Assembly: GCA_047495785.1 (NCBI GenBank)
Contig: JBLDXI010000054.1
Span: forward strand, 2,852,001 to 2,916,000
Source: Lepidodermella squamata
Taxonomy: Eukaryota; Animalia; Gastrotricha
DNA length: 64,000 nucleotides
Direction of reading: 5' to 3'
Every line of letters begins with the position of its first letter. Position 1 is the first letter of the stretch. The position numbers and the translations under genes are program-made. The notes under the pieces are model-generated. The model was not told the DNA's origin and searched no databases. It saw only the letters and a program-made list of their open reading frames with translations. Of the stretch, positions 5,015 to 28,555 are shown piece by piece.

Positions 5015-5086
5015 GGTCCCATGGTGTAGCGGTTAGCACTCAGGACTCTGAATCCTGCGACTCGAGTTCAAATCTCGATGGGACCT
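5015..5086 (+). tRNA. trnQ-CTG: tRNA-Gln(CUG), copy 1
   Basis: 72-nt cloverleaf GGTCCCA...TGGGACCT, anticodon arm CAGGA-CTCTGAA-TCCTG, T-loop TTCAAAT, followed by an oligo-T Pol III terminator. Confidence 0.97.
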
Positions 5087-5133
5087 TAATTTTTTTTTCG
5101 GCCTCCTTTTTCGACATTTTTTTTTACTTCGCC

Positions 5134-5184
5134 GCATATACAAATAATTACACTTGATGTCTTGCCCTTTATCATAGATCGGCT
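5134..5184 (+). promoter_or_regulatory. Putative bipartite snRNA promoter (PSE-like) upstream of U4
   Basis: CATATACAAA at about -75 to -66 and AGA[AT]CGG[CT]T at about -34 to -26 are kept in all five otherwise divergent tRNA-U4 spacers. The proximal element also precedes the truncated U4 at 11211. Confidence 0.55.
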
Positions 5185-5209
5185 TCAGCTCATATTTTCG
5201 TTGATCTTT

Positions 5210-5347
5210 AGCTTTGCGCAGTGGCAGTTCCGTACTCAGTGAGGTGCAAACCGAGAGGCGGAAATTGCTAATTGAAAACTACCCCAATTACCCGCTCTGA
5301 GGACCTACGGGTCCGCTGTAGCACTTTCTGGAGCCCCACAAGGGGCT
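5210..5347 (+). ncRNA. RNU4: U4 spliceosomal snRNA, copy 1
   Basis: Starts AGCTTTGCGCAGTGGCAG (U4/U6 stem II); k-turn stem-loop CTC-AGT-GA-GGT-GCAA-ACC-GA-GAG; TTGCTAATTGAAAAC (stem I); Sm-site region ACTTTCTGG; 3' hairpin AGCCCC-ACAA-GGGGCT. Confidence 0.95.
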
Positions 5348-10468: not shown

Positions 10469-10564
10469 ATCTTAACAAAGAAAATCATAGAGGATAAACT
10501 CAACGATTAAAAATAGCAATAAACGGCAAATACAGGAATTGCAACTTTGTTTTAGGTATTCACA

Positions 10565-10702
10565 AGCCCCTTGTGGGGCTCCAGAAAGTGCTACAGCGGA
10601 CCCGTGGGTCCTCAGAGCGGGTAATTGGGGTAGTTTTCAATTAGCAATTTCCGCCTCTCGGTTTGCACCTCACTGAGTACGGAACTGCCACTGCGCAAAG
10701 CT
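10565..10702 (-). ncRNA. RNU4: U4 snRNA, copy 2
   Basis: Reverse complement of copy 1 apart from one T/C in the GGACC[T/C]ACGGGTCC hairpin. Confidence 0.95.
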
Positions 10703-10822
10703 AAAGATTATCTAACATCGAAGCAGGAGCCGTTCTATGACGAAGGGCAAGACATTAAGTGAAATAATTTGTATATGCTGTGAAAGTAAAGAAATGTCTA
10801 AGAGGAGGCCGAAAAAAAGTGA

Positions 10823-10894
10823 AGGTCCCATCGAGATTTGAACTCGAGTCGCAGGATTCAGAGTCCTGAGTGCTAACCGCTACACCATGGGACC
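10823..10894 (-). tRNA. trnQ-CTG: tRNA-Gln(CUG), copy 2
   Basis: Identical 72-nt sequence on the minus strand, followed by a T-run. Confidence 0.97.
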
Positions 10895-11008
10895 GCTTGA
10901 AAAACTTGGTTGCATATACAGTTTTGATATCTCTATAACGCAATTCGTGGAATAATGTCTCGCTCATCAGTTTATTCCCGTCAGATCAAATTGTGACTAG
11001 CATTATTC

Positions 11009-11187
11009 TTATGTGAACAAGATCAGTGGAGTTATTGCTATAAGAGCTTTGTGCCGATTTCTTATCGAATTGTGGAACGCTGGATGTTCAACATCCTTAG
11101 GAATATTGGGGAATTTTAAACGAGCAGGTGAACATCTTGGGGAACGAACCTCTCCTGGAAGTATTTCGCTGATCCGTTTCTCGTTCA
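11009..11187 (-). pseudogene. 3' fragment of a glycosyltransferase gene (copy of the end of 18336-19334)
   Basis: Reverse complement closely matches about 19156-19334, including the intron and the DVEHPAFHNSIRNRHK exon. Similarity continues through the 3' flank to the tRNA. Confidence 0.85.
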
Positions 11188-11211
11188 CTGCGCCTGCCTC
11201 TGCGGAAAGCT
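11188..11211 (-). pseudogene. Truncated, degenerate U4 5' fragment
   Basis: AGCTTTCCGCAGAGGCAG (2 mismatches to the U4 5' end), preceded by AGAACGGCTCCAGCTTCGATATTAG, which matches the proximal upstream sequence of intact U4 copies. Confidence 0.7.
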
Positions 11212-11257
11212 AAGGGTCTACTAATATCGAAGCTGGAGCCGTTCTTTAACGCCTCTA

Positions 11258-11740
11258 AGAGTGAAATTCACTTTGACACGTGCAGCTCTCGTGGAAGCCC
11301 CACATGGACCGCACCCTGAGCCGCACCCTGAGCCGCACCAAAATCTCTCTTGGTACCATCGTTTGGCGCCCTGGGCTCACTTTCTGCTGGCGTCATGCCA
11401 GATACCTCGCTCACATCCGCTCGATGGCGACTTTCGGCTGCGCTGTACAATTTTCGTCCGCTATTAAGCAAAAAGCAACACCTGCGCCGCCTCGTCGTCC
11501 TCAAAAACAATTTCCTGCGTGCTATGCTTAAAGTTCGCCTCGCTGACCGCGTTCGCATCACCGAACTCGAGCGGCGATGTCGCCTGCCCGGCCTTTCCGA
11601 GTTTTTCTCCCTGGTTCTAAGCCGCACGCCTGCCGCCATGTCCTATCTCTCCGATTTCTGTTTCTGTTTACTCTCTGTCTTCACCGCTGTTCTAGCACTT
11701 GCGTTCCCCTTCTCATTCACCTACACCCGATAAAACGTTT
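11258..11740 (+). mobile_element. 5'-truncated non-LTR retrotransposon (LINE) ORF2 3' remnant
   Basis: Frameshifted reading LSWKPHMDRT...YLAHIRSMATFGCAV / LRRLVVLKNNFLRAMLKVRLADRVRITELERRCRLP matches the post-RT region pattern of LINE ORF2. Confidence 0.65.
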
Positions 11741-11963
11741 AGCTGGTAAAAATTCCATCCTTTTGCCTCCCCACCAGCGTCGAACTGTGTCAGACAATCG
11801 CGCGTGCTCGCGTTGTGCCGGCGCCTTCTTGTTTTTTGTCTGCTTTTGAATTTATTTAATTTGTATGTCAAATGAGGACAGCAAAAAAAGATTTTCGTTA
11901 CGCTCAACGAAAATCTGCAATTCTCTAGTTTGCTCAAATGATGAGCGCAGAGAAATTTTCCCT

Positions 11964-12979
11964 TCAACTGAATAAGATTAAGGGCGAGACCATAATTCGC
12001 GCCTTATTGCGCTTTTTGATCGAATAATGGAAGGAAGGATGCTCGACGTCCTGAAAGAAAGCAATCAAATCTTCACTTGTATTTTTATATAAAATTTTAG
12101 CCTCACCTCCCGCATTTCGAAGTCACTGAGCTTCTTTTCAGGCAGATACGCATTATAGTATCCGCCAAAGGTTACATTCATCTTGTAGATCGCAAATCCA
12201 TTGAAAGCTGAATCGACTTCGAAAAACCCACTTGGGCCAATTGAATTCAATGTACCATTAATGTTTCCCATGAATACAGAGTTCATGGGATCGCCATTGC
12301 CCCAATCATTGCTATTCCAGCCGTTGTAACGCAGTGCCCATAAGTCGTAGTAGTACGGCCTGTTGAAACTCACCACGTCCCATTTATCAGAATTTTTCAT
12401 GACAAAATCTAATTTTGTTAGATTGGCACGACTGTGTGCCGTAGTGTCATCCATGTCGATGGTTGCCATGTAATCGAAATCAGCGAAATGGCGATGGACG
12501 AATTGGAGCAATGTATTGCGCCCGATTGCTATGCGCCAACACCGGACCGGAAAGCACTCATGAAGATGGTCGACAATGATCAAGCTAAAACGAGGGGACA
12601 ACCTCTTCTTATGAAGCTTTAACTTGGCGAGAGTGCCATCCTCTGAATCGCTCACGAAAATAACGAAATGACAGTCCGCGAAAGCGCTGCATACTCTTTC
12701 CATTTGCACTATTGTCCTGTCGACATATTTTACAATATTTTTCGCCATGCCGGTAATAACAAGGCGGGGCGAGTTATTCTTCCGGTGACGCATTTCAGAT
12801 AAACCTGATTTGCCTGTTTCCGCCAATAATTCAAGCGAAGCCTGCTCAACCGCCGGCTGCGTTTTGTAGTGACACTGTAACCACGAGAAACAGCGAGTGG
12901 TAGCATTCAATATGTATTTTGATCCCGCTATAAGGAGGAACAATTTAACGATATAAACGAGAAGCGAATTTGAGCGCAT
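11964..12979 (-). CDS. GT-A fold glycosyltransferase with N-terminal membrane anchor (GT-1)
   Basis: ITGMAKN, SDSEDGT, RIAIGRN, DxD motif IDMDD, YYDLWALR, VDSAFNGFAIYK; intron 12051-12106, then DVEHPSFH...LILFS*. Confidence 0.85.
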
Positions 12980-13240
12980 GACGTTTTTGTATTTGGTTCA
13001 TAGGTATTCAGTTTGGTCATAACAGTGTTTCAGGGAGGCTTGGTTAAAATGAAATAAACACTTTGATATTCAGATACTAACCGTTATAAGGTGCAGCACG
13101 ATTGCGATGCGATTGTATTTAGTAGCTAACGACATTCTTAACATCTCGCGCAGCGAAGAGAAATGCTTATTTTCAGACGTTGCGAAATTGTTAGCAACAT
13201 GCTATTCCAATGGATTGTCGCAGATTATTTGTTATTCAAA

Positions 13241-13378
13241 AGCCCCTTGTGGGGCTCCAGAAAGTGCTACAGCGGACCCGTGGGTCCTCAGAGCGGGTAA
13301 TTGGGGTAGTTTTCAATTAGCAATTTCCGCCTCTCGGTTTGCACCTCACTGAGTACGGAACTGCCACTGCGCAAAGCT
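13241..13378 (-). ncRNA. RNU4: U4 snRNA, copy 3
   Basis: Same sequence as copy 2. Confidence 0.95.
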
Positions 13379-13497
13379 AAAGATCAACTAATATTTATGC
13401 TGAAGCCGTTCTATTCTGAAGGGCAAGACACCAAGTGAAATAATTTGTATATGCGGCGAAGTAACAAAAAATGTCTAAAAAGAGGCTGAAAAAATTA

Positions 13498-13569
13498 AGG
13501 TCCCATCGAGATTTGAACTCGAGTCGCAGGATTCAGAGTCCTGAGTGCTAACCGCTACACCATGGGACC
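13498..13569 (-). tRNA. trnQ-CTG: tRNA-Gln(CUG), copy 3
   Basis: Identical 72-nt sequence followed by a T-run. Confidence 0.97.
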
Positions 13570-14154
13570 AGATATGGATTGCAATTCGTTGGGCTTATCT
13601 GTATTGAATCTGATTATCAACCGACAAAACGTTCACGATCGGCTATTAATACGTAATATTAAATGCCCTTTAGTTATCGGAATATTTTACACCTCATATT
13701 TGATGTGGTTGAATTTGAGACGTTAGCTGATTGCTTTCCGATTAGACTTAATGGATATACTAGGGGTATTATTTTACAGAACAGATTGCGACATTTTGAT
13801 ATTAAATAAGTGTTACCTTTCCTAGCATGAGTAAAATTTCCAGCAAAGGAACGTCCATAAATTTAGTTCAACATTGTGTTCAAGGTAAAAAGCGCAAAAC
13901 GGATGTTTTTAGCGCATATACCCCTAGGCCAAATATATGTTAGGGCTATATGTAATTATATGTTTACATAATTTTACATAATGGACAGTTGATTTTCACA
14001 TATTGGACAGTTGATTTTTTAAGGAGGAGCACATATTGGACAGTTGTCTATTGTTCAGACCCATGAAACTCAAGAAACCCAAGAAACCCGTGGAAACCAA
14101 AATAGCTTTATTATTCAAAGTCAATTGAGCCCTTCACAAAGTTGTCGCAGCCCG

Positions 14155-14420
14155 AAAACCGAGCAGCATTCAGTCCAAATTTTGACAAATCGAGCAGCAA
14201 TCGGCCCCAATGTCGTGAATATCAAACAGCATTCAGCCCCAATTTCAACAAAATCGAGCAGCATTCCGTCCAATTTTCGACAAAATCGAGCAGCATTCCG
14301 TCCAATTTTCGACAAAATCGAGCAGCATTCCGTCCAATTTTCGACAAAATCGAGCAGCATTCCGTCCAATTTTCGACAAAATCGAGCAGCAATCGCCAAC
14401 ATTTCGTGAGATTGAGCAGC
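14155..14420. repeat. 32-bp minisatellite, about 8 units
   Basis: Unit AAAATCGAGCAGCATTCCGTCCAATTTTCGAC; CGAGCA recurs at 14255, 14287, 14319, 14351, 14383; outer units degenerate. Confidence 0.92.
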
Positions 14421-15093
14421 ACTCAGCGGCAATCTTCCAGCACCCAGAACTCCACCGGGACAATCGAGGCATCCAAGCAGCAGTCGTCATCAATGTTGAG
14501 AAAATCGCGCAGCATTCCCCCTCGAAATTGCCAAAACAGCGCCGTATTCGTCTTGTTTTCCGTGCCATTCCATCAGCCTTTGTTCCTGGCTCCAACTGGT
14601 TCAACGGCACTCTTCCTCGAACGGGATCGATACCATGATTGAGCTTGAGATCGACAATGACCAGATCGGCGACTAGTTGCCATGAGTCGAATTCACTCGC
14701 CAGGTTGATTTGATGAGCCGACAGTTCAAATAGCTCGAGCCATTGTGCGATTCTTCATCGTAGCAGCGTGCCAGTTTGACGCGAAGATCCGGCGGCAAAA
14801 AAGCGAGTGAAAATCAAAACGAAAATCGACCGAATGAGCGTTTGATTTAAAAATGGCGAAAAGCTCAGTTTTTGATGAAAAATTAAGTTGGATGTTTTAT
14901 TTTCCCATTTTCCATGATAACCTCACAAATAATGTCCTCGCCTGCGGCTCGGCCATTATATGTTCGGTTTTTCAACATATTTCCTCCTCTATGTCCAATA
15001 TATACACATAAATACCACTGATAAGATCAGCCTGCTATCATTTCAAGATTTAAGGGGCTTCGTCGCTAAAAAATTATTTTGAAGTACAATTCC

Positions 15094-18077
15094 ATGTTAT
15101 TCAATTGTCTTCACTTGCTAATCTTAAAGTATGCGTAATATTTTTTTTGCATCGCCTTTTTTCAATAACTTTTCAACCATGAGGAATGTTTTAAAGTGGT
15201 TTTCACCAGTCGATAGATCTAGTCTGCGGTAAACTTTCCTCAAATTTTCATTTGAATTGGGTGCGAGAGAAAAAATTGGTGACGAAAATTCTGTCCGCGA
15301 TTTTTATTGAAAATTCTCATTTTTGAAAAATGGCATTTCACAGGATTTGAGGTTGGAAGACATCCTCCTGTTGAAAGGCTTTATCGGAATTTTTTTTAGC
15401 AGGAAATTAGGTCAATAACGCACCGTCAACAAGGAAATTCGACTTAGCGACCACAAAGAAGGTCTTATCCACCAAACGCGATCCGAAATGAATTTTCGGA
15501 ATTTTTTGAGTGATTTGTGTCAATTTTATGAAGCCTTCAGTTTTGGATAGTTGTACAATGTTCTTTCAGGAATCAGTGACGTAGATCCATTACGGACCAT
15601 CCTCTCAAAAAAACTCGAAGCCTCTGGCAAGAGAGACAATCAATTCAGACCAAATAAGATGCAAAAATAGCATTTTTCAAAAATGAGAATTTTCAATAAA
15701 AATCGCGGACAGAATTTTCGTCACCAATTTTTTCTCTCGCACCCAATTCAAATGAAAATTTGAGGAAAGTTTACCGCAGACTAGATCTATCGACTGGTGA
15801 AAACCACTTTAAAACATTCCTCATGGTTGAAAAGTTATTGAAAAAAGGCGATGCAAAAAAAATATTACGCATACTTTACTTCTTCGCGTTTGTATTGCAA
15901 CAAGCGTGAAAGAGAAAGTTTTACAAATGATTGCACTGGTACCAATGACTGGCTACCAGCCGCGTGATGGAAAAATGTGTATGACGGCGATGCAGGTGGC
16001 TGTCAACGAGGCAAACGCAAAATCCGATTTTCTGCCCGAATACCGCGTAGAAATTGCATTCAGAGATGAAGGCCCTGGAGGAGCCTTTAGCCCACGGCAT
16101 CTTATCAACTTCCTTAATACTCCTAGAAACATAACTACTGCTATGTCTCCTATAATTTTGGGCAGTTTCTTTCAGTGCCAAACTGCACACGATATTGCTC
16201 GTGAAAACTACATGGCCATGATAAGTCCCGGCTGTTCAGGCTATCTTCTACTCGATCGCAGCAGGTATCAGAACCTTTACCGAACAATGGTCCCTAGCGA
16301 CTTAACCAACGAAGTCCTGATTCAAATAATTAAAAAAGTTGGGAAGTGGCGTCAAATCGGCCTCGTTCTTAATGCTGTGAACCTCAACATTTTCGCCCTT
16401 GGCAAATCTTTTTATGACAGAGCTGTTAGCAAGGGTATCGAAATTGTCCAATTTACAATTGTAACCGATATAACAGATGAGACTATCGATTCGATTATTC
16501 AAAGCAAAGCTCGAATTATCAAACTGCTGATTGTTGAAATTCCTCTGGTCGTCAAATTTATCTGCCTAGCCTATGCGAGAGGACTTCGAGCACCAAAGTA
16601 TGTCATCATGACCCCGTATACAAACTACGTTGATCCGCTAGCTGCTAGCCTGCAACTTCCTGCTGGATGCAATCGGAGAATGATTGCAGACCAAATCAGG
16701 ATCACGCTGTATCATGGCGCTGCTACAATGCCTATTCGTAATTTTGGTCAAACAGATCTGGGCTACGACCTCAGCGGCTATACGACACGTTTTGATTCGC
16801 TGACGAGCGGATCTCGCCTCCCCGACTATGAGATCAGTCCTTACTGCCACGACTCAGCGGTACAAGCTCTTGTAGCCCTTCACAACGCTGAAATGAGACT
16901 CAGTGCGAGAAATTTGACGCTAATGCATTTTCGCGATAACCCGGCAGAAGTCTTTCGGGTAGTCAACCAAACAATAGCCGAGTCGGATTTCATTGGCATC
17001 CGGGCAGGTCGTCTGAAGTACTCGTCTCGCCTCGAGTTCGAATACGAAGAAATGTATTTAATACAACGCACGGCAGGTGACAACCCAAGAATAGTTGGGA
17101 CAATCGTTAAGAATGAATCGTCCACCGATTTTTCATTCGTCAAAAATTCAAAAGCTGTTTGGGTAACTGCAACTGGTAAATCGCCAAAAGATCTCTCGCA
17201 GGTGCTTCAAATAGAAGTCCGTATAAATCCAAGTATACCTCCTGCAATCCTAAGCTCAAGTTTGCTGGTAATAATCACTCAGTTATTCATAACCGTGTGG
17301 AAAATCCGTGAAAGGCCGACTGTGGTAAAATATTTGGATGTAAGCTTTTCTTGTGGCTGTTCCATGCTGAACGTTGCTGCTGTACTTCAGACATTAGAGT
17401 TGACCTCCAATGTGATTTGCGTAGCTCGGGAATCTCTCCTGCTGTTGGGGTTATCATTACTCGTATCAGTAATGCTAGTTCAAGTTTTGCAGCTGAAGAT
17501 TGCACAGCGTGAACGGTCGGCTTCAAGCACACTAAGCCGCTACAATTCGATTGGTCGGAAAGCAAAAAATCGCTGCTACATTGAGGTTAGGCCACAAACA
17601 GTACCTAAAGGAGTCGTCACTTCTTCCGTTTGCTTTATCTTTTTCAACATTGCAATGTATGCAGTTCGGTCCTTTTCGGATCCAATCGCAGTTATGATGG
17701 ACCAAAGTGCAATCGAGTTTAACCAGGAAGTGGATAACTACATCCAGCTTAACGTCAAAACATGTTCTTCTGAGCATCTTAGCCTTTGGTTGGCCACATT
17801 TGCCTGTCTACATGTTTTGTTGCTAATTACAATAAGCTCGCTTCATTTTCAGATGTCTCAGCTGAAATTTATCACAGAAAATGGAGCGATATACAGTGAA
17901 GCTAGATGCCATCGCTTAGCCTCTTGGAATTTGACTATTCTTCTTACCTTCGGTGCGTTTCTAGCGGTAGTCGTGCCTAGTGACGCGTCATTTCAAGCCG
18001 CGCTATTTAGCTCTGTGCTACTGGTTGTATCTGCATCTTCGAGTTCCATATATTTTAGTTGGAAATTGACGAGCTAA
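15094..18077 (+). CDS. Class C GPCR, GABA-B-receptor-like (Venus flytrap domain + 7TM), signal peptide interrupted by a MITE
   Basis: 723-aa ORF with AVNEAN..DFLPEY, LLDRSRYQNLYRTMVP, SPKD before TM1, no Cys-rich domain and seven hydrophobic segments. ATG 15094 joins in frame once the element at 15127-15876 and one TA are removed. Confidence 0.85.
15125..15878. mobile_element. MITE / non-autonomous DNA transposon with long perfect terminal inverted repeats and TA target duplication
   Basis: 15125-15332 is the reverse complement of 15671-15878 (208 bp including the flanking TA); 338-bp non-coding core. Confidence 0.93.
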
Positions 18078-18335
18078 AACCATTTTTAGGTGGAATGAAG
18101 ACAAATATCGGAAATTGCCCGAATAATCTAGTGAAGTAAACTTGAGATTTAATATGGGAATATGTGAAAGATAAGCACCTTTCTCGCGGATTAGGTAACG
18201 CAGGTAAAGCCACGTGACAATAAAGGCTCACTTTTCAGTTGCGCAACATGCTTAACAACCAAGCCTTGGTGTAACAGCGCGTGAGAGCGCCATCTATGGA
18301 ACATTGAACTGTTACAGTTAAAAGAGACTGAGCAG

Positions 18336-19334
18336 ATGTACATTATCGGCTGTTTTGCATTTTTCAAATTTCTGCCCTTCATCGCAGCCTCTGTGCCCCT
18401 TTTTAATTTGATACGCTGGGTATTACTTCTGAAATGCCACTATGAATCGCAGGTGGCCTTGGAGATGGCATCGTTTGAACTTCTTTCTAATCGTAATGAT
18501 TATAAAGAGGCTAAAGCCGTCGAGAACGCACCTCGTATAGTAATTACTGGCATGGCCAGAAACATTGCTAAGCACGTGGACGGCACATTCGCTCAAATCG
18601 AAAAAATATGCAGCGTATTCCGAGATTGTCACATCGTCATTTTCGAGAGCGACTCAAAAGATGGCACCCTCGAAAAATTGAGACAGCAACAGGCGAAGTT
18701 TGCTAATCGGGTGAATGTAATCTCAGTCAGTGGACTCGACTATTGCCTATGGGCCCGAACGTTTCGTTTAGCTAAAGGTCGAAATACGCTTCTTCAATTT
18801 GTGCATCGCCATTTCACAGATTTTGATTACATGGCTATGATCGACATGGATGAAACGACAGCGGCTAGAGATGTGAATATTACTGTTTTAAATTTCACCC
18901 TCAACAATTCTGATCGGTGGGACGTTATAACCTTTAACAGAGCTTCTTACTACGACATCTGGGCGTTGCGTTATCGCGGTTGGGATAGCAACGATTGGGG
19001 CAACAGCGATCCTCGAAATTCTGAACTTCAGGCCAATATATCCCATACGTTGGAATCGATAGGACCGCATGAATTTCTATACGTCGATTCGGCATTTAAT
19101 GGGTTTGCGATCTACAAGATGAATTTCACATTTGGAGGGCATTATGCTGGCTATTTGAACGAGAAACAGATTAGTGAAATACTTCCAGGAGAGGTTCGTT
19201 TCCCAAAATGTTCACCTGCTCGTTTAAAATTTTCCAATATTTCGAAGGATGTCGAACATCCAGCGTTCCACAATTCGATAAGAAATCGGCACAAAGCTCG
19301 AATAGCAATAACTCCACTGATCCTGTTCACATAA
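18336..19334 (+). CDS. GT-A fold glycosyltransferase (GT-2)
   Basis: Same motifs as GT-1 (FESDSKDGT, RLAKGRN, IDMDE, YYDIWALR, VDSAFNG, DVEH). A 54-nt in-frame GT-AG intron at 19194-19247 sits at the paralogous position. Confidence 0.85.
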   Translation: MYIIGCFAFFKFLPFIAASVPLFNLIRWVLLLKCHYESQVALEMASFELLSNRNDYKEAKAVENAPRIVITGMARNIAKHVDGTFAQIEKICSVFRDCHIVIFESDSKDGTLEKLRQQQAKFANRVNVISVSGLDYCLWARTFRLAKGRNTLLQFVHRHFTDFDYMAMIDMDETTAARDVNITVLNFTLNNSDRWDVITFNRASYYDIWALRYRGWDSNDWGNSDPRNSELQANISHTLESIGPHEFLYVDSAFNGFAIYKMNFTFGGHYAGYLNEKQISEILPGEVRFPKCSPARLKFSNISKDVEHPAFHNSIRNRHKARIAITPLILFT

Positions 19335-19439
19335 GAATAATGCTAGTCACAATTTGATCTGACGGGAATAAACTGACATTATTCCACGAATCGCGTTATA
19401 GAGATATCAAAACTGTATATGCAACCATGTTTTTCAAGC

Positions 19440-19511
19440 GGTCCCATGGTGTAGCGGTTAGCACTCAGGACTCTGAATCCTGCGACTCGAGTTCAAATCT
19501 CGATGGGACCT
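19440..19511 (+). tRNA. trnQ-CTG: tRNA-Gln(CUG), copy 4
   Basis: Identical 72-nt sequence followed by a T-run. Confidence 0.97.
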
Positions 19512-19627
19512 TCATTTTTTCGGCCTCATTTTAGAGATTTTTTACCTCGCCGCATATACAAATGATTTCATTGGCGGTGGGTCCCATCATTACAGAACGG
19601 CTCCTGCTTCGACTTTTGTTGATCTTT

Positions 19628-19765
19628 AGCTTTGCGCAGTGGCAGTTCCGTACTCAGTGAGGTGCAAACCGAGAGGCGGAAATTGCTAATTGAAAACTAC
19701 CCCAATTACCCGCTCTGAGGACCTACGGGTCCGCTGTAGCACTTTCTGGAGCCCCACAAGGGGCT
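19628..19765 (+). ncRNA. RNU4: U4 snRNA, copy 4
   Basis: Same sequence as copy 1. Confidence 0.95.
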
Positions 19766-20512
19766 TGTGAATCCGATACAAATTTTCAAGACATTGGGAA
19801 TCTTCAAATTCATTTGCGGTCATTTGCTGTGATAAGACAACGCGGCTCTAAAACTCCAAATGATTTTTATTTTCAATTTGTACTTAAATTTGTTGGAACA
19901 GAATTAAAAGAAAAGATTTAGTCTTAATATCGGGGAAGTGAGGCGCTTACTTAGTTTGGCATTAGGAACCAGACTGCTAAGGCAAAATAACAAAACAAAT
20001 CATCCTATATAAAAATCACTGTGAGAGCGCCCTGCTCTATTTTGCAGGAAAATTCCCACAAAAAAATTATCAATAAAAACAATGAACTTTCGCTATCACG
20101 CGTTTCTTTCGCCATAACGCTGTGCAACCAGCTACATATTCCATTATCCGTCATAAGATTGCAAGAAAAATCAAAATCTTGCTAATCACGTGATTGCACA
20201 GGAAACAAGATTTTCCCCCAAAAATCATCCAAGCCACAGCAGACGACAATCAGTCAATAATGAGGCATATACCCCATAACGCTATTGGCCTTCAAGGTGC
20301 CCTTGCCATTGCAAAATAAGATAGCAAACCGTTGGAATAATATTTGGCAAATTCGACTTACTAAGCGGCATTAATAGAGGTTTCAGCTTCCAAATAATCT
20401 GTCTGTGTCGCAGACAACTGCACCCTAACGATTGTCTGACGATCGTCTCATTTTAACCAAGCCTTCCCACAGCACGTTTACTAGTCCTTTGACCAAACAT
20501 TGCAAAAACATA

Positions 20513-21537
20513 ATGCGCTTGACTTGGCGTCTAATTAAATTTTTTAAATTGTTTCTTGTCATAGTGGGATCTAAGTACGTCTTAAGTGCCAGCTTTCGCT
20601 GCTTTTTATGGATACATTGCCACTACAATACGCAGATGGCAATTGAGAATGCATCGCATGAATTATTGGACCATCGCAATGCAATTAAAACAATCATAGA
20701 TGATACATCTAACGTGGACAACCAGAGGAAATACTTGCCCAGTCTTGTTATTACCGGCATGGCAAAAAATATTGTAACGGAAGTAGACAGGACAATAGCG
20801 CAAATGGAGAGAATATGCAGCTTATTCCATGATTGCCACATCGTAATTTTCGTGAGCGATTCAGCTGATGGCACGATCGCCAAGTTGCAGTATCATAAAA
20901 AGAGATTGTCCCCTCGTTTTAGTTTGATAATGGTTGACCAACTTCGTTACTGCTTACCGATTCGATGTTGGCGCATAGCAAAAGGGCGCAACACCCTGCT
21001 CCAATTCGTCCATCGCCACTTCGCTGATTACGATTACATGGCAACCATCGACATGGATGACACTACGGCACACAGTCGTGCCAATCTAACAAAACTAGAT
21101 TTTGTCATGAAAAATTCTGACAAATGGGACGTTGTGAGTTTCAACAGGCCGTACTACTACGACTTATGGGCACTGCGTTACAACGGCTGGAATAGCAATG
21201 ATTGGGGCAATGGCGATCCCATGAACTCTGAATTCATGGGAAACATTTCTGGTACATTGCATTCATTGGGCCCGAGTGGGTTTCTGGAAGTCGATTCAGC
21301 TTTTAATGGATTTGCGATCTACAAGATGAATTTCACATTTGGCGGGTATTATAATGCGTTTCTGAGTGAAAAGCGACTAAGTGACTTGGAAATGCGGGAG
21401 GTAAGTTGATATTATATAGAAATGCTGAGATGATCATTTTGTTTTAGGACGTCGAACATCCTTCCTTCCATTATTCTATTACAAAGCGCAATAAGGCGCG
21501 AATTATGGTCTCACCCTTAATCCTATTCGACAGCTAA
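20513..21537 (+). CDS. GT-A fold glycosyltransferase (GT-3)
   Basis: ATG 20513 (MRLTWRLIKFFKLFLVIVG); same motifs; intron 21401-21447; last exon DVEHPSFHYSITKRNKARIMVSPLILFDS*. Confidence 0.85.
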
Positions 21538-22152
21538 TGGTATCGGGAGTTGATGATTTTTTACTCCGGACAGCAATCATATCCGGATCTCGATTGATCG
21601 TCCTTCAGCTCGCATATAGCTAGCCTTCAGGCCGAAATCCACCGTTGTGATATCCTCCAATGATACACATATTGCATAATATAATTATTTCAAGCCTTCA
21701 ACTCTCTCATTTTGCCCTATGGGATCTATTAGCACTGCTCAAATACACTTCGAAAAATATGGCATCCACGTAAAAAGGAATGAGTGTCGATCGCTCTTGG
21801 TTGTTTTGTGAGAAAGATAGTCTCAGCCATGTCTCAACACTCCTTTAAAGCTCCAACAATTCAACATCAAACTCCAACATCAAAAAGGATCTAAGAAATA
21901 AATTGTTGGTTTATTGTTATACCTTTGCAGCGATGTGCTTTACGAATAGTTCCGTTATATGGCTAAGCAAGCAATTTCATGAATGCGAAAAAAAGAAATA
22001 TAATGCAAGTCATTTGTTGTTCAAGACGGAAGAATAAATTGAGGTAAAATGAGTTGGAGCTTTAAACCGCGCCGGTCCCATGATTTAGAAGATGGCCGAG
22101 GAATTATTACATCTGAAAGTTGTATTCTAACTCCAGGTCATGTTTTTCAAGC

Positions 22153-22224
22153 GGTCCCATGGTGTAGCGGTTAGCACTCAGGACTCTGAATCCTGCGACT
22201 CGAGTTCAAATCTCGATGGGACCT
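22153..22224 (+). tRNA. trnQ-CTG: tRNA-Gln(CUG), copy 5
   Basis: Identical 72-nt sequence followed by a T-run. Confidence 0.97.
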
Positions 22225-22346
22225 TCATTTTTTTTTCGGCCTCCTTTTTATACATTTTTTTTACTTCGCCACATATACAAATTATTTTACTTGATGCCTT
22301 GTCCTTCAGAATAGAACGGTTTCCGCTTCGATCTTAGATAATATTT

Positions 22347-22484
22347 AGCTTTGCGCAGTGGCAGTTCCGTACTCAGTGAGGTGCAAACCGAGAGGCGGAA
22401 ATTGCTAATTGAAAACTACCCCAATTACCCGCTCTGAGGACCCACGGGTCCGCTGTAGCACTTTCTGGAGCCCCACAAGGGGCT
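22347..22484 (+). ncRNA. RNU4: U4 snRNA, copy 5
   Basis: Same sequence as copies 2 and 3. Confidence 0.95.
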
Positions 22485-22958: not shown

Positions 22959-24930
22959 TCAGAAAGACAAGTTGTTCATCGCCGCAGCGCTCGGCAGTGC
23001 CTTCTGATTTGTGATTCTCGAATTTTTCAATAAAGTGCTCGACAACAATGGCCGCTCCGCAACACTAAGATCGCCCTTCCGCAAAGGTGTCGCACCAATG
23101 AACTGTGACGGAGCCTCGTAGAACAGCTCACGAGACAGCATAACCTGCTCCATGCCAAGATTCTTCGCTGTTTTCTCAGCCAGCTTATTGAAATCGACAA
23201 AATGAACAATGTCACGTTGAACCGCTCGGCCAGAACTGTCGATCAGGGGATGATCGTCGGCGTCCAGCTTAACCATCTCGTCGAACGGGCCACGACCGAC
23301 GCCGACGATAATGATCGAAATCGGCAGGGAACTTGCATGAACGATAGCTTCAATTGTGGACTTCATATCAGTGATGTATCCATCCGTGAAAATTAGCAAA
23401 ATGAAATAATGCTTGTCGTCATTGTGTTCATGAGCTAGACTGTAGAAAATGGCAAAATAGTTAACAAAAATCGGTATAAGCGCTAAATTACTTGGCCACT
23501 AGGTTTATCATTGGGGATAGTTCGGCAGGTTCTTGCGGTATAATTTTCTTTGTTGCAGCTCGGTACGTCGACAGAACCTCTTCGACCCCAAAACAAGCCG
23601 GATTTTCTTGGTCTCCTGACTGAAAAAACACAAGACTAAATTGCCCAGAATGAGACTTTTCGAGAATTATACCAAAGCGAAATCGTGACGAAGTTCCATA
23701 GAAGGCGGAGCTTGAGCACCGAATCCATAGACAGGTAGGACTAATTCCGTCGAATCGTCGAGGGATTGGGCCGACTCAAGAACTGTTTTTATGGCGTCGT
23801 AATAAGGACCCTTTGTGTTCCTTCCGCTCCCCTCGATCTTGTGCAACCACATAAGGGTATCCGAAGAGCCATTGGACGCCGAAAAATCAATAGCAACAAA
23901 GTAATGCAAAGACGTTCCCCTGAAACAACGAAAAGCACGATCATCAGAAGAGGTCCATAGACCCTCCCAGGAGGATCACAAAGGTCCCCTAAAAAAATTA
24001 CCGGAGAAGAACGAAGTCCAGGAAAAATTCGTGGATTTCTTTTGAGATGCCGACAAGTCGCATCGTCATGCCATTGATCGACATGGGATAGATGTTGTCG
24101 GCACTGTTATCCGAGGCCAGTCTTCGCAGGTTGGTTTCCCGGCTGCAAATCAGCTTATGACTACCATTCGATTTAGCCTTCCATAGCGATAAATGCAAAG
24201 TTTTATCCTCATCGTCGGAGCAAAGCGAGAATCTTGTAATGTTAAACGAGTTCCAAAGTTGGTTCAACGACGTTTTAGCGTCATTTTTCACCGATATCTG
24301 CTCGCTTCGATAGACAAGCTGCTGCCGCCCCTCCATAGATTTTCTCAATTCGAAAAAGTAAGAAGCTGGTTGGAGTAACTTTGGCGGTGGTAAATTGTCG
24401 ATTCCGAAGCGAATGATCAACGAATCCCTCCGATTTTCAAGAACTTCAGCTGCGATAACTAGCAAACCTCGCGGCTTCGAATTGCCCTTCACAAAAATCT
24501 TCTCTTCATGAATTAGGAAAGAATTGAATTCGACAAGAGCGCTGAGGGCTAGTTTCGCCTTCCCGACCAAATTCTCCTTTTTGAAAATCGCTTTCTTGAT
24601 TGGGATAGTTGGCTTCCAGTCATCAACGTCCCAGACACGGAATTTAATCCTTTGCCGCTCGCCTGGGATGTAGCACACGCAGACTTTGGTCGAAAACTCC
24701 GGGTTCAGGTTGTCCCAAATGACCTCGGTACGGCCGATTTCTTTCCAGCGATCGGTTTTACACGTAGCACCCATATTTTCGATGTAAGCAACAATGCAGG
24801 CGTCGGTTTTCGAGAAAGTGTCCATGTTTTTGAGCTCGCGACAACTCAGCGTCATTTCAATGATGCATTTGTCGAGGCAGCTTTTCGGCATGCCGAAAGA
24901 ACTTTTCGATGGCACTGATCGGGTTAACAT
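22959..24930 (-). CDS. CPNE: Copine (C2-C2-vWA), paralog 1, divergent
   Basis: DTFSKTD...GRTEVIWDNLNPEF (C2A); [31 protein letters not shown] (vWA); four exons. Confidence 0.92.
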
Positions 24931-25776
24931 CTTAAGCGTAGAAACAAAAGCTATAGAGCAGGTTCTATCGACATACGAGTTTTCAATTCTTGTTGTAATT
25001 TTAGATTTGGTGTCATTTGGCTTGCAATCTCATATCTTTTGCTGACCATCTGGCTCAAGCTTTACAGCATGGATCTCTCATCGAACTGAAACAAAGGCCC
25101 AAACATGTCGTAACATAACCGTACATACATGTCATAACGATGAGGGCTACTTTGGACGACACCATTATTTTCGGAGGTTGTAAATCGGATGTTGCTGGAA
25201 AAAAATCTGATTTTTCTGCAAATTTTAGGAATTTTCCAATTTTTATTAAATTTTTGGCAATTTGGAATTTTTCTGCAAATTTGGACAATTAGCAGTTAAT
25301 TTATTGACACTCATTTGCATATTCAGCGGCCTCATAAGTCTCTAAAGATTCGTCCATGATAAATAGGTCAAATTTATAATGAAAAAAAATTGAATAGAAA
25401 GGAAAATTGGAAATTTTCGAAATAATTTTCGAAAAACTCAATTTGAAAAGCCTTGAAATAAAACAATAACCTAAATAAAAAATACGTTCAATATTACGAA
25501 ATGCGTCTCGTGCTATTGTCTTACTCTCCTGTCAGCCTAGCTTTACGCCGAAAAATTAGGGTAAAATATTGGAAGAAAATCAGAGAAATCAGGCATTTCC
25601 ATTCCATAATCTTTCCAATTTTAAGCGAATTCTTAGGCTAATGAGTAATAAAAATAAAATATTTTTTTGAGACTTGAAAGATGAAATGAATTGAAACAAA
25701 AAGCACAGGTTGTATTTATTAGCTCAAAATATCAACTGAATTTAAATAGTCAATAGAGGCATTCATATAATTCAAA

Positions 25777-27933
25777 TCAAAACGAGATACTGCCGTACGC
25801 TGAACTTTCAGGGCTAGATAACTGCCCTGCCATTATATTCGTCCGATCGCAGCTTCTCAGAAGGGTACTAGACCTTAAAGGCCGGCCTAGGACAACATCA
25901 CTCTCCCGAATCGGCGACGCGCCAATAAATTGCCCGGGAGCTTCGAAGAAAAGTTCGCGCGACAGCAAAATCTGCGCCATGCCCAAATTGTGCGCCGTTT
26001 TCTCCGTCAGCTCGCTGTAGTTGACAAATTGCACGATATCACGCCGCATTCGCTCGCCTTTACTATCGACCAATGAATGTTTATCCGCATCCAGCTTAAC
26101 CATCGCGTCAAACGGACCGGGCCCAACGCCGACGATTATGATCGAAAACGGAAGGGAACTCGCGCCAACAATTGCATCTATCGTGTCTCTCAAATCGGTG
26201 ATATAACCGTCGGTGAACATCAATAAGATGAAATAATGTTCATCGTTATTGTTATCCTCAGCGAGGCTAAAAGAATGAAAAAAAGAAGAGAAATTTGTGA
26301 AAAAAAAATCTATTTTTTTATAAATTTACTTTGCAACGTAGCGAATCATCGGAGCGAAATTCGCTGGGTCTTGAGGTTTGATTTTCTTCAAAGCAGCCCG
26401 ATATAGCGCCAGAACTTCTTCAACCCCGAAACAGGTAGGATTTTCCTGATCTCCGGTCTGAAAAAACAGCTGGGAATTAAACCAATTTTTTACTTGAATT
26501 TTCTTACCAAGGCGAAATCATGGCGAAGTTCCATAGAAGGTGGAGCTTGGGCCCCGAAGCCGTAAACAGGTAGAACCAATTCGAGGGAACCTTCAAGTGC
26601 TTGGGTTGCTTCGAGAACAGTTTTGATTGCGTCATAATAAGGACCGGTCACGGATTTTCCAGTTCCTTCCACGTTATGTAGAGACATTAGGGTGTCCGTG
26701 GTGCCGTTTGAAGATGAAAAATCGATGGCCACAAAATAATGCAGGAATGTTCCTCTGAATTTGAAAATGGAATAGAAATCGAAATTTTTAGGTTTTAAAT
26801 TTTCTCGTTTTCAAATGATGAAAATTATTAAATTAAAAAAAATTGAAATTTTTTAAATTTTGAATTTTTAAATTTTAAATTTTCAAATTTATGAATTTTC
26901 AAAATTTCGAACATTTTTAATCATTTTTTTAATTTTTAACATTTCGAACATTTTCAACATTTTTTTTAATTATCCGAGCCATGAATGCTTTTAATATTCA
27001 ATAATACCTGAGGAGAACGAGGTCCAGGAAAGTTTCGTGAATTTCCTTCGAAATTTGTGTCATTTTCACCGTCAAGCCATTGATTGACATCGGGTAGATA
27101 TGATCACCTTTATCAATAGATAGAAAGCGCCGTAACGTTGTCTCCCGGCTGCATATCAGCTTGTGCTTGCCATTGCCCTTCGATTTCCACAGGGAGAGGT
27201 ACAAAATTCTGTCCTGATCATCGGAACAAAGGGAATATCTCGTGATATTAAACGATTTCCACAGTTGGGTTAACGATTTTTGACAATCGTTTTGTCTCAG
27301 TGCTAATAACGGCTCGCTTCGATAGACCAACAACTGGCGGCCTTCGATTGTTTTCCGAAGTTCGAAGAAGTAGTAAGATGGGAGTAGCATTTTAGGCGGT
27401 GGCAAATCATCGATTCCGAACTGAATTGTCACTGAATCTTTTCGGTTTTGAAGAACTTCAGCCGCGATAGATAGCAAACCTCTAGGCTTCGAATTACCCT
27501 TCACGAAAATCTTCTCCTCGTGAATCAGGAAAGAATTGAATTCGACTAAAGCACTTAGGGCTAGGGTCACTTTCCCGACCAGATTTTCCTTTTTGAAAAT
27601 CGGCTTTTTCGATATTGTTGGCTTCCAATCATCGACGTCCCATACGCAGAATTTGATTCGTTGCCGCTCGCCGGGGAAATAACACACGCAGATTTTCTTG
27701 GAAAAGTCCGGATTCAAGTTGTCGAAGATAACTTCAGTCCGGCCGAGTTCTTTCCATCGATCCCGCTTGCTTGCACCGAGTTGTTCGAGGTAGGCTACAA
27801 CGCAGGCGTCGGTTTTCGAGAAAGTGTCCATATTTTTGAGCTCGCGACAAGAGATTGTCATCTCGAAAATGCACTTGTCCAAGCAGCTTTTCGGCAGATT
27901 GAACGAGCTAGTTGTAATTGAGGATCTACTCAT
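25777..27933 (-). CDS. CPNE: Copine, paralog 2 (sister of paralog 1)
   Basis: Same motifs and same three introns as paralog 1; ATG 27933. Confidence 0.92.
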
Positions 27934-28555
27934 CGTCCTGATCTTCCTTCCGAATTGCGAAAACAATAAAATCTAACGAAAAACCAGGCAGAATTCGGAA
28001 TTAATTAGGGCATTGAACTTTCACAGTTGGTTGCAAATATTTATGCAATTGGGATGATAAATCTCGCCGCTTGTCTATTCAGCTTCGATCCAGGTGTGTA
28101 AGTCGTAAAAACTCAGAATGAAGGCATAAAAATGAAAAAAAAATGCCGGAAAGCTTGAGCAGGCACCGTAGCGAAATTTTTGAATAATTTTGTCAGCCAA
28201 TCGATGCCAAAAAGTTAGACTGTCACGCGATTCTCAGCTGCTTTTCTTAGGCACGTGTCATCATTTTTTTAATCTATATAGGATCTTCTTGGTTTTACGA
28301 TCATGCTCTTGATATTCGATATTGGAATGTAGAAAAATACGTTGTAATTGAAAATTATTCTTTATTTTCTGAAAATTTCCAATAAATTATTAATAATACA
28401 AAGACGACGAGTTTCAGAAGTATAAGATCGTGAAAAATTATTAGCAATTAATGACATATTTTTCCAGTTCAAAAACTGTACCCAACAATCAATCGCACCG
28501 GTATTTACAAGACACTCGATATAAAGCATATTTTGTTCAAAGCGAAAAACTTGAC

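Follow-up and report, generated by a model that had tools for sequence, protein, structure and literature searches.

Can a cluster of small-RNA genes drive the duplication, inversion and loss of a neighboring enzyme family? This question is raised by a locus of the gastrotrich Lepidodermella squamata at which genes for glycosyltransferases (GTs) alternate with paired genes for a glutamine transfer RNA (tRNA-Gln) and the U4 small nuclear RNA (snRNA). We have analyzed a window of 64 kb, by which we mean the whole stretch of DNA at C54:2852001-2916000 (C54 being its contig), in an assembly of 121.2 Mb and 151 contigs; the data cover one assembly and one haplotype and consist of sequence only. The original prediction proposed that the identical tRNA and U4 sequences act as recombination anchors that expand and invert a cargo gene. 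We find that the RNA genes do exchange sequence among their copies, and that the clean GT duplication ends away from them. The locus was probably formed by ordinary local segmental duplication, together with concerted evolution, in a duplication-prone region. We infer that the tRNA-U4 modules are co-residents and exchange sites and not the engine of the GT copies.

Two opposed arms make up the locus, with five tRNA-Gln(CUG)-U4 modules, three intact GT2-like genes, a GT 3' remnant, a 58-bp U4 stump and a piece of a long interspersed nuclear element (LINE). The RNA genes were called with ARAGORN (tRNA) and with Rfam (tRNA and U4). GT-2' denotes the GT-2-like 3' remnant in the left arm, and M* the truncated module beside it. 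The features are:

5015-5345, plus strand: module M1, with tRNA-Gln(CUG) at 5015-5086, a 123-nt spacer and U4 at 5210-5345 (ARAGORN, Rfam, self-comparison)
10567-10894, minus strand: module M2, with the tRNA at 10823-10894 and U4 at 10567-10702 (ARAGORN, Rfam)
10895-11187, minus strand: GT-2' remnant, contiguous with M2 and made up of the final 179 nt (11009-11187) of coding sequence of GT-2 type and its 3' flank
11194-11251, minus strand: M* stump of 58 bp, with 40 nt of the spacer upstream of U4 and U4 nt 1-18
11266-11906, plus strand: LINE 3' fragment, a 5'-truncated retrotransposon without long terminal repeats, at the expected site of the tRNA and the remaining spacer of M*
11964-12979, minus strand: GT-1, with exon 1 at 12979-12107, a 56-nt GT..AG intron at 12106-12051 and exon 2 at 12050-11964
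12276-12477, minus strand: recent conversion tract within GT-1, with its counterpart in GT-3 at 21030-21231
13036-13045, minus strand: AACCAAGCCT 10-mer, 57 nt 5' of the GT-1 ATG
13243-13569, minus strand: module M3, with the tRNA at 13498-13569 and U4 at 13243-13378; neither side has a common flank
18257-18266, plus strand: AACCAAGCCT 10-mer, 70 nt 5' of the GT-2 ATG
18336-19334, plus strand: GT-2, a single open reading frame (ORF) of 332 aa
19440-19763, plus strand: module M4, with the tRNA at 19440-19511 and U4 at 19628-19763, beginning 105 bp past the GT-2 stop codon
20455-20464, plus strand: AACCAAGCCT 10-mer, 49 nt 5' of the GT-3 ATG
20513-21537, plus strand: GT-3, with exon 1 at 20513-21400, a 47-nt intron at 21401-21447 and exon 2 at 21448-21537
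22153-22482, plus strand: module M5, with the tRNA at 22153-22224 and U4 at 22347-22482; about 610 bp of genome-unique DNA separate it from GT-3

The arrangement of GT copies, tRNA, U4, LINE piece, truncated U4 and GT-2-like fragment had been predicted, and ARAGORN, Rfam and self-comparison bear it out. The two opposed arms are real as well, but one does not mirror the other. In the direction of the genes, the GT-3-type gene precedes the GT-2-type one in the left arm, whereas GT-2 precedes GT-3 in the right arm. The recurring colinear unit of GT, tRNA and U4 was also found: every one of the four GT copies has a downstream module on the same strand. The gap from stop codon to module is 105 bp for GT-2 to M4, 105 bp for GT-2' to M2, about 610 bp for GT-3 to M5 and, once the LINE is removed, about 82 bp for GT-1 to M*. 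M1 carries 33 nt of GT-2-type 3' flank 5' of its tRNA.

Sequence exchange at the RNA genes

In the window, each of the five U4 genes is a full-length match to Rfam RF00015 (106-107 bits, model positions 1-138; gathering score 46 bits). The five tRNA-Gln(CTG) genes identified by ARAGORN score 65 bits with RF00005 (gathering score 29 bits). In each window module the tRNA sits 116-123 nt 5' of U4 on the same strand. Genome-wide there are nine modules, all on one contig and grouped in two clusters separated by 150 kb; the second of these (cluster 2, C54:2689823-2711652) contains four, C2a-C2d. One cluster-2 module is preceded, at a distance of 160 nt, by an additional tRNA copy. No tRNA adjoins the remaining five U4 genes (on C17, C45 and at C54:3.11 Mb); the copy on C45 has a tRNA-Gln about 380 bp upstream. 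The tRNA is identical at 72 of 72 positions across the five window modules and identical in all nine modules, and the U4 copies in the window differ by at most 1 nt. The claim that tRNA and U4 are identical is correct for these RNA-coding parts and incorrect for the spacers between them, which are 72-85% identical within the window and 64-80% identical between the clusters.

G23 and C50 are found in all five U4 genes of the window, and A23 and U50 in the nine copies elsewhere (4/4 in cluster 2 and 5/5 unlinked). Positions 23 and 50 pair in the U4 5' stem-loop, and the structure obtained with RNAfold is the same for both variants, i.e. the change is compensatory. A private G23-C50 pair fixed in the local U4 copies is, as read from these alignments, a textbook sign of concerted evolution.

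The sequence history switches exactly at the tRNA in three modules. M2 and M4 mismatch at 15 of 284 positions left of the tRNA, as against 28 of 116 positions in the spacer (Fisher 3e-7). This contrast is the opposite of what constraint would lead one to expect, since what lies to the left is a fragment of a dead gene. Among the cluster-2 modules, the 40 nt 5' of the tRNA group C2a with C2d, and C2b with C2c, whereas the spacers group C2a with C2c (94% vs 65%, p=3e-8). The C2a and C2c modules are 95% identical, and they lie beside an inverted pair of class C G protein-coupled receptor (GPCR) genes that are 81% identical, with a synonymous divergence (dS) of 0.55. A compensatory pair private to the five local U4 genes, together with the histories that switch at the tRNA, shows that the RNA genes exchange sequence; as judged from the aligned copies, they are sites of homologous exchange. 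The mosaic modules M2/M4, C2a and C2c are explained equally well by gene conversion, and none is tied to a GT duplication or inversion. The predicted role as recombination anchors is thus supported for exchange at tRNA and U4, where the history switches and the private G23-C50 pair are found, and is not supported for the GT genes, for which we found no duplication or inversion that ends there.

The cargo exchanges sequence too. The conversion tract of GT-1 and GT-3 has 3 differences in 200 nt, and the other roughly 900 columns of the alignment have 217 differences (about 76% identity). A 97-nt identical run within the pair was matched in 0 of 20,000 random placements. The arms therefore exchange sequence through the cargo itself. 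Both signs of concerted evolution are present at the locus, namely local derived changes (G23/C50) and tracts that are more alike than neighboring neutral sites. As judged by the copies compared here, purifying selection and gene conversion among copies keep the RNA genes identical, and the modules are mosaic because conversion tracts begin or end within these identical tRNA and U4 sequences.

Clustered snRNA genes are a classical case of concerted evolution (Liao et al. 1997, as cited in PMC2582628). The human RNU2 tandem array resembles our locus in that local snRNA copies are kept identical by intrachromosomal homogenization, here visible as G23-C50 in all five genes. RNU2 repeats one unit uniformly, head to tail. 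In the window, by contrast, different protein genes stand between the copies, which occur in both orientations, and only the module of about 350 bp is homogenized. GT-1 and GT-3, 8 kb apart and in opposite orientation with a near-identical tract of 200 bp, are comparable to inverted or tandem duplicates of protein genes between which ectopic gene conversion occurs, as reviewed for Drosophila (PMC3924832). The GT-1/GT-3 conversion is an ordinary example of this and differs in nothing essential.

Ends and ages of the glycosyltransferase duplications

The homology between GT-1 and GT-3 covers 11970-13052 and 21528-20448, from about 73 bp 5' of the ATG, at the 10-mer, to the stop codon. Local alignment of their flanks against shuffled sequences detected no residual homology (z 1.2-1.5). 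The non-aligning DNA that separates this pair from the modules measures 176 and 675 bp on the upstream side and about 610 bp on the downstream side, and it is genome-unique. The intron inside the pair (47-56 nt) is still recognizably alike, unlike the flanks. GT-1/GT-3 is the sole duplicate pair of full length, and neither end of its duplicated segment lies inside tRNA or U4. The original prediction had named breakpoints away from the RNA genes as the result that would speak against GT copies being made or inverted by exchange at tRNA/U4, and this is what the pair displays. We also considered that transposon insertions in these flanks mask an older module-to-module duplication. This was rejected; the flanks are unique, and only 11266-11906 is a repeat.

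Homology continues from cargo into module only for GT-2' and GT-2. Here the predicted common flank (10895-11187 vs 19156-19439) was recovered as part of one block of 630 bp with 91% identity in the self-comparison, 10558-11187 on the minus strand and 19156-19772 on the plus strand. It spans the last 179 nt of GT-2-like coding sequence, the 3' flank, the tRNA and U4 without a break. At least one event has copied or converted a GT 3' end and the tRNA jointly. The coding part of GT-2' differs from GT-2 by 7% (13 differences), and the 3' flank by 2%. Their recent similarity may reflect a conversion that erased the original type of the remnant.

GT-2 is synonymously saturated against GT-1 and GT-3. 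The split of GT-2 and GT-3 is, on this measure, far older than the modules look. Since GT-2 and GT-3 are saturated and the spacers are 72-85% identical, the similarity of the modules results from later homogenization and not from co-duplication. The divergence levels differ across the pairs, and therefore the copies do not all derive from one event. One-step histories, by an inverted duplication or by the inversion of a periodic array, were considered and do not fit the order of GT types in the arms.

The left arm has decayed. U4 nt 18 is fused to codon ~273 of GT-2', and the junction has only the microhomology GC.G. As its sequence reads, this is a non-homologous microhomology deletion junction and the sole breakpoint inside U4. 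The LINE fragment at 11266-11906 has at least 52 matches genome-wide, and it aligns to the 3' part of a longer copy with a 633-aa ORF (RVT_1, E 4e-28).

Weighing the explanations

Segmental duplication with concerted evolution would have acted at this locus in several steps. Lineage-specific families (GT2-like, class C GPCR and copine-like) and the tRNA-Gln/U4 pair would have been copied locally many times and in both orientations. An old tandem pair of units of GT, tRNA and U4 would have given rise to GT-2 and GT-3. A later array in the opposite orientation would have contained M3, GT-1, M*, GT-2' and M2. This opposite array would then have decayed, with the LINE fragment replacing the tRNA of M* and a deletion of an estimated 1.3-1.6 kb joining U4 nt 18 to codon ~273 of GT-2'. 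Several observations weigh against this reading. The module directly downstream in the same orientation is found in 4/4 GT copies, in 3/4 of them within about 80-105 bp of the stop codon when the LINE is removed, and this association is tighter than residence in the same region alone predicts. The modules behave as discrete copied units, because their homology limits are constant (8-23 nt past U4 and 0-33 nt before the tRNA, except for M2/M4). Furthermore, one rearrangement junction does lie inside U4, and the order of events is not uniquely recoverable.

The original prediction takes these observations further. The identity of tRNA and U4 would serve as substrate for non-allelic homologous recombination; unequal crossover between direct modules would duplicate a GT, crossover between inverted modules would flip it, and the array would drive GT birth and death. 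The regular unit of GT, tRNA and U4, the 630-bp block from the GT-2 3' end through tRNA and U4, and the history switches at the tRNA in three modules all speak for it, and so does the fact that the function-losing lesions of the dead unit both struck M*. In yeast, tRNA genes are about 3-fold enriched at evolutionary breakpoints and at sites of gene gain (PMC2675101). Nevertheless we regard this account as doubtful. The homology of GT-1 and GT-3 ends at the stop codon on the downstream side and 176-675 bp short of the modules on the upstream side, and the DNA between them and the modules is unique and unalignable although the intron is still alike. The U4/GT-2' junction is non-homologous with microhomology only, the arms are not mirror images, perfect identity extends over only 72 and 136 bp, GT-2 and GT-3 are saturated against spacers that are 72-85% identical, and the copine genes were duplicated without modules. 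A related account, which we consider rather improbable, makes the tRNA-Gln/U4 pair a recombinogenic hotspot, for example by replication-transcription conflict; it would copy neighboring genes in either orientation by template switching, GT genes here and, independently, class C GPCR genes 150 kb away. The sharp common limits of the modules and the genome-unique flanks of M1, M3 and M5 could instead mean that the tRNA-U4 module of about 350-390 bp is itself mobile, or is copied independently, and was inserted beside pre-existing GT genes, the GT association being secondary. This seems improbable: no terminal inverted repeats surround M1, M3 and M5 (target-site duplications were not searched for), and the nine modules aligned with their flanks have neither a common end sequence past the module limits nor a poly-A tail. 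Moreover, all nine modules lie in two clusters on one contig, five other U4 genes lack the tRNA, and M2 and M4 share 293 bp of GT sequence upstream.

It is very improbable that the inverted layout is an artefact of the assembly, or an amplification chimera if the assembly was made from multiple-displacement-amplified (MDA) DNA. A published Lepidodermella squamata assembly was obtained from MDA DNA and HiFi reads (122 Mb, 157 contigs), and MDA can form chimeras, but no chimeric contig was reported for that assembly (PMC11660948), which may be the present one. A chimera or a haplotig duplication would give near-identical arms, whereas these arms have diverged (81% for GT-1/GT-3, 91% for the 630-bp block, 72-85% for the spacers) and are marked by a LINE insertion and a deletion, both private, and by unique flanks that differ.

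The closest known parallel is found in yeast, where near-identical multi-copy tRNA genes lie beside rearrangement endpoints and beside newly gained or expanded families (Gordon, Byrne and Wolfe 2009, PMC2675101). All members of the yeast family YPR071W adjoin tRNA genes, and among the causes proposed are ectopic recombination of tRNA copies with one another and the stalling of forks at genes with high transcription (PMC2675101). The window is alike in having multi-copy tRNA genes beside rearrangement ends and expanded families. It is unlike yeast in that the yeast evidence consists of genome-wide statistics, often with Ty-mediated events (PMC2675101), whereas here we deal with one animal locus, at which the tRNA is welded to U4 and the ends of the clean GT duplicate lie away from the RNA genes. 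If it were true that the RNA genes drove the copying, the locus would show compactly how small-RNA genes can seed the growth of enzyme and receptor families in an animal, an idea so far documented only statistically, in yeast. With segmental duplication and concerted evolution as the preferred reading, the locus is a worked example of concerted evolution of a tRNA-snRNA module with a compensatory stem change fixed locally, and of gene conversion between inverted paralogs. It also demonstrates that selective constraint can fake breakpoints at gene borders. It is useful for annotating the genome and is not a new mechanism.

Genes of the locus and their neighborhood

The GT genes have about 300-330 codons. 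In nucleotide self-comparison GT-1 and GT-3 are 81% identical over 1.1 kb, and GT-2 is 68-70% identical to either. The last exon of GT-1 and GT-3 has 28-29 codons and follows a short GT..AG intron. With a dS of 0.41, a ratio of nonsynonymous to synonymous divergence (dN/dS) of 0.35 and canonical short introns, both are intact genes. In GT-2, the 54 nt (19189-19242) that match the intron site of GT-1 and GT-3 (12051-12106, 21401-21447) stay in frame, begin with GT and end with AG. This in-frame stretch could be the result of intron loss, exonization or optional splicing. A genome search for other GT copies returned only those of the window, the remnant and one 27%-identical relative at C54:2683230. 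For the check proposed earlier, whether GT family members elsewhere also flank the module, this sole relative is the only case, and it lies about 6 kb from a cluster-2 module.

The label glycosyltransferase holds at the superfamily level only. Direct Pfam searches gave for GT-2 only PF13704 (E 0.001, 20 bits, below the cut-off of 27.5) and nothing for GT-1 and GT-3, whose exons were treated separately, so that no search used joined spliced models. PDB and NCBIfam searches with the window GT proteins returned nothing useful. A database search with these proteins found 122 relatives with up to 36% identity, mostly metagenomic, of about 260 aa and with PF00535; no animal homolog was among the relatives returned, and they lack the N-terminal anchor of the window proteins. 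The canonical introns nevertheless mark the window GT genes as residents of the animal genome. PF00535 is matched by 16 of 24 aligned family members (best E 1.5e-9), and the family profile hits the solved structures of GalT1 (5hea, E 8.9e-5) and chondroitin synthase (2z87, E 2.4e-4). In the D-x-D motif D170 is invariant and D172 is present in at least 90% of the 24 sequences. Judging from these matches, the window genes are GT2-like (GT-A fold) glycosyltransferases at the superfamily level only. They resemble the GT-A fold GT2-like enzymes (PF00535, PF13704, PF11735) in that their relatives at 26-35% identity mostly have PF00535 and the D-x-D motif is conserved. They differ in that they reach only PF13704, below the cut-off, and add an N-terminal membrane anchor and a short intron.

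The predicted motif upstream of all three GT starts was confirmed. AACCAAGCCT occurs exactly 3 times in the 64 kb, 49-70 nt 5' of each GT ATG, against a chance expectation of 0.09, and 0 of 100 shuffles reach 3. It is kept even where the surrounding sequence is unalignable. The motif may be a family-specific promoter, 5' untranslated region or trans-splice-site element.

The 3' half of the spacer contains an ATAT(G/A)CAAAT-like element and other motifs that are also found 5' of the unlinked U4 genes. The octamer-like element lies about 75 nt 5' of U4, at the same distance in unlinked and tRNA-linked copies. It reads ATATGCAAAT in 3/5 unlinked U4 copies, from which the remaining two deviate by one or two bases, and ATATACAAAT or (A/G)TATTCAAAT in the modules. 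Because the unlinked U4 genes carry the same upstream element, U4 has its own promoter and the tRNA is not the U4 promoter. The tRNA in the module has its own T-run 3' of the gene, and by these signals the pair is not dicistronic. In trypanosomatids, snRNA genes have an upstream divergent tRNA gene whose A and B boxes act as promoter, and plants have dicistronic tRNA-snoRNA genes. The modules resemble these linkages in the fixed short distance between a tRNA gene and another small-RNA gene. They are unlike them in that tRNA and U4 share a strand, and in that the tRNA, which lies 116-123 nt upstream and has its own T-run, is not needed as U4 promoter.

Two further features lie between the GT-1 and GT-2 units:

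13570-15905, no strand: center between the arms, with a 32-bp tandem repeat and a 99% inverted repeat
15906-18077, plus strand: class C GPCR-like ORF with an ANF_receptor domain, ending 259 bp 5' of GT-2 on the same strand

The arms had been thought to diverge around the GPCR. It belongs to the right arm, and the true center is at 13.6-15.9 kb, where self-comparison detected no GT or module remnant. The 32-bp tandem repeat of the center has about 8 copies at 14155-14410. The inverted repeat of 214 bp, 99% complementary (15125-15338 and 15665-15878), lies just 5' of the GPCR ORF.

Beyond M5 lies a tandem pair of copine-like genes (22959-27966, minus strand) with a C2 domain and a C-terminal exon, 69-75% nucleotide identity and a dS of 1.74. 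The pair abuts M5, and there is no module between its copies. The GPCR pair in cluster 2 and this copine pair without a module indicate that the cargo is not GT-specific and that modules are not needed for duplication here. The cluster-2 region (C54:2678001-2718000) also contains a third GPCR, a copine-like gene and a remote GT-like gene; this copine-like gene is related to the tandem copine pair of the window. Elsewhere in the genome, a two-armed tRNA-Gln array is found at C1:5089631-5166370, with a period of about 6.05 kb and six copies on the plus strand followed by four on the minus strand.

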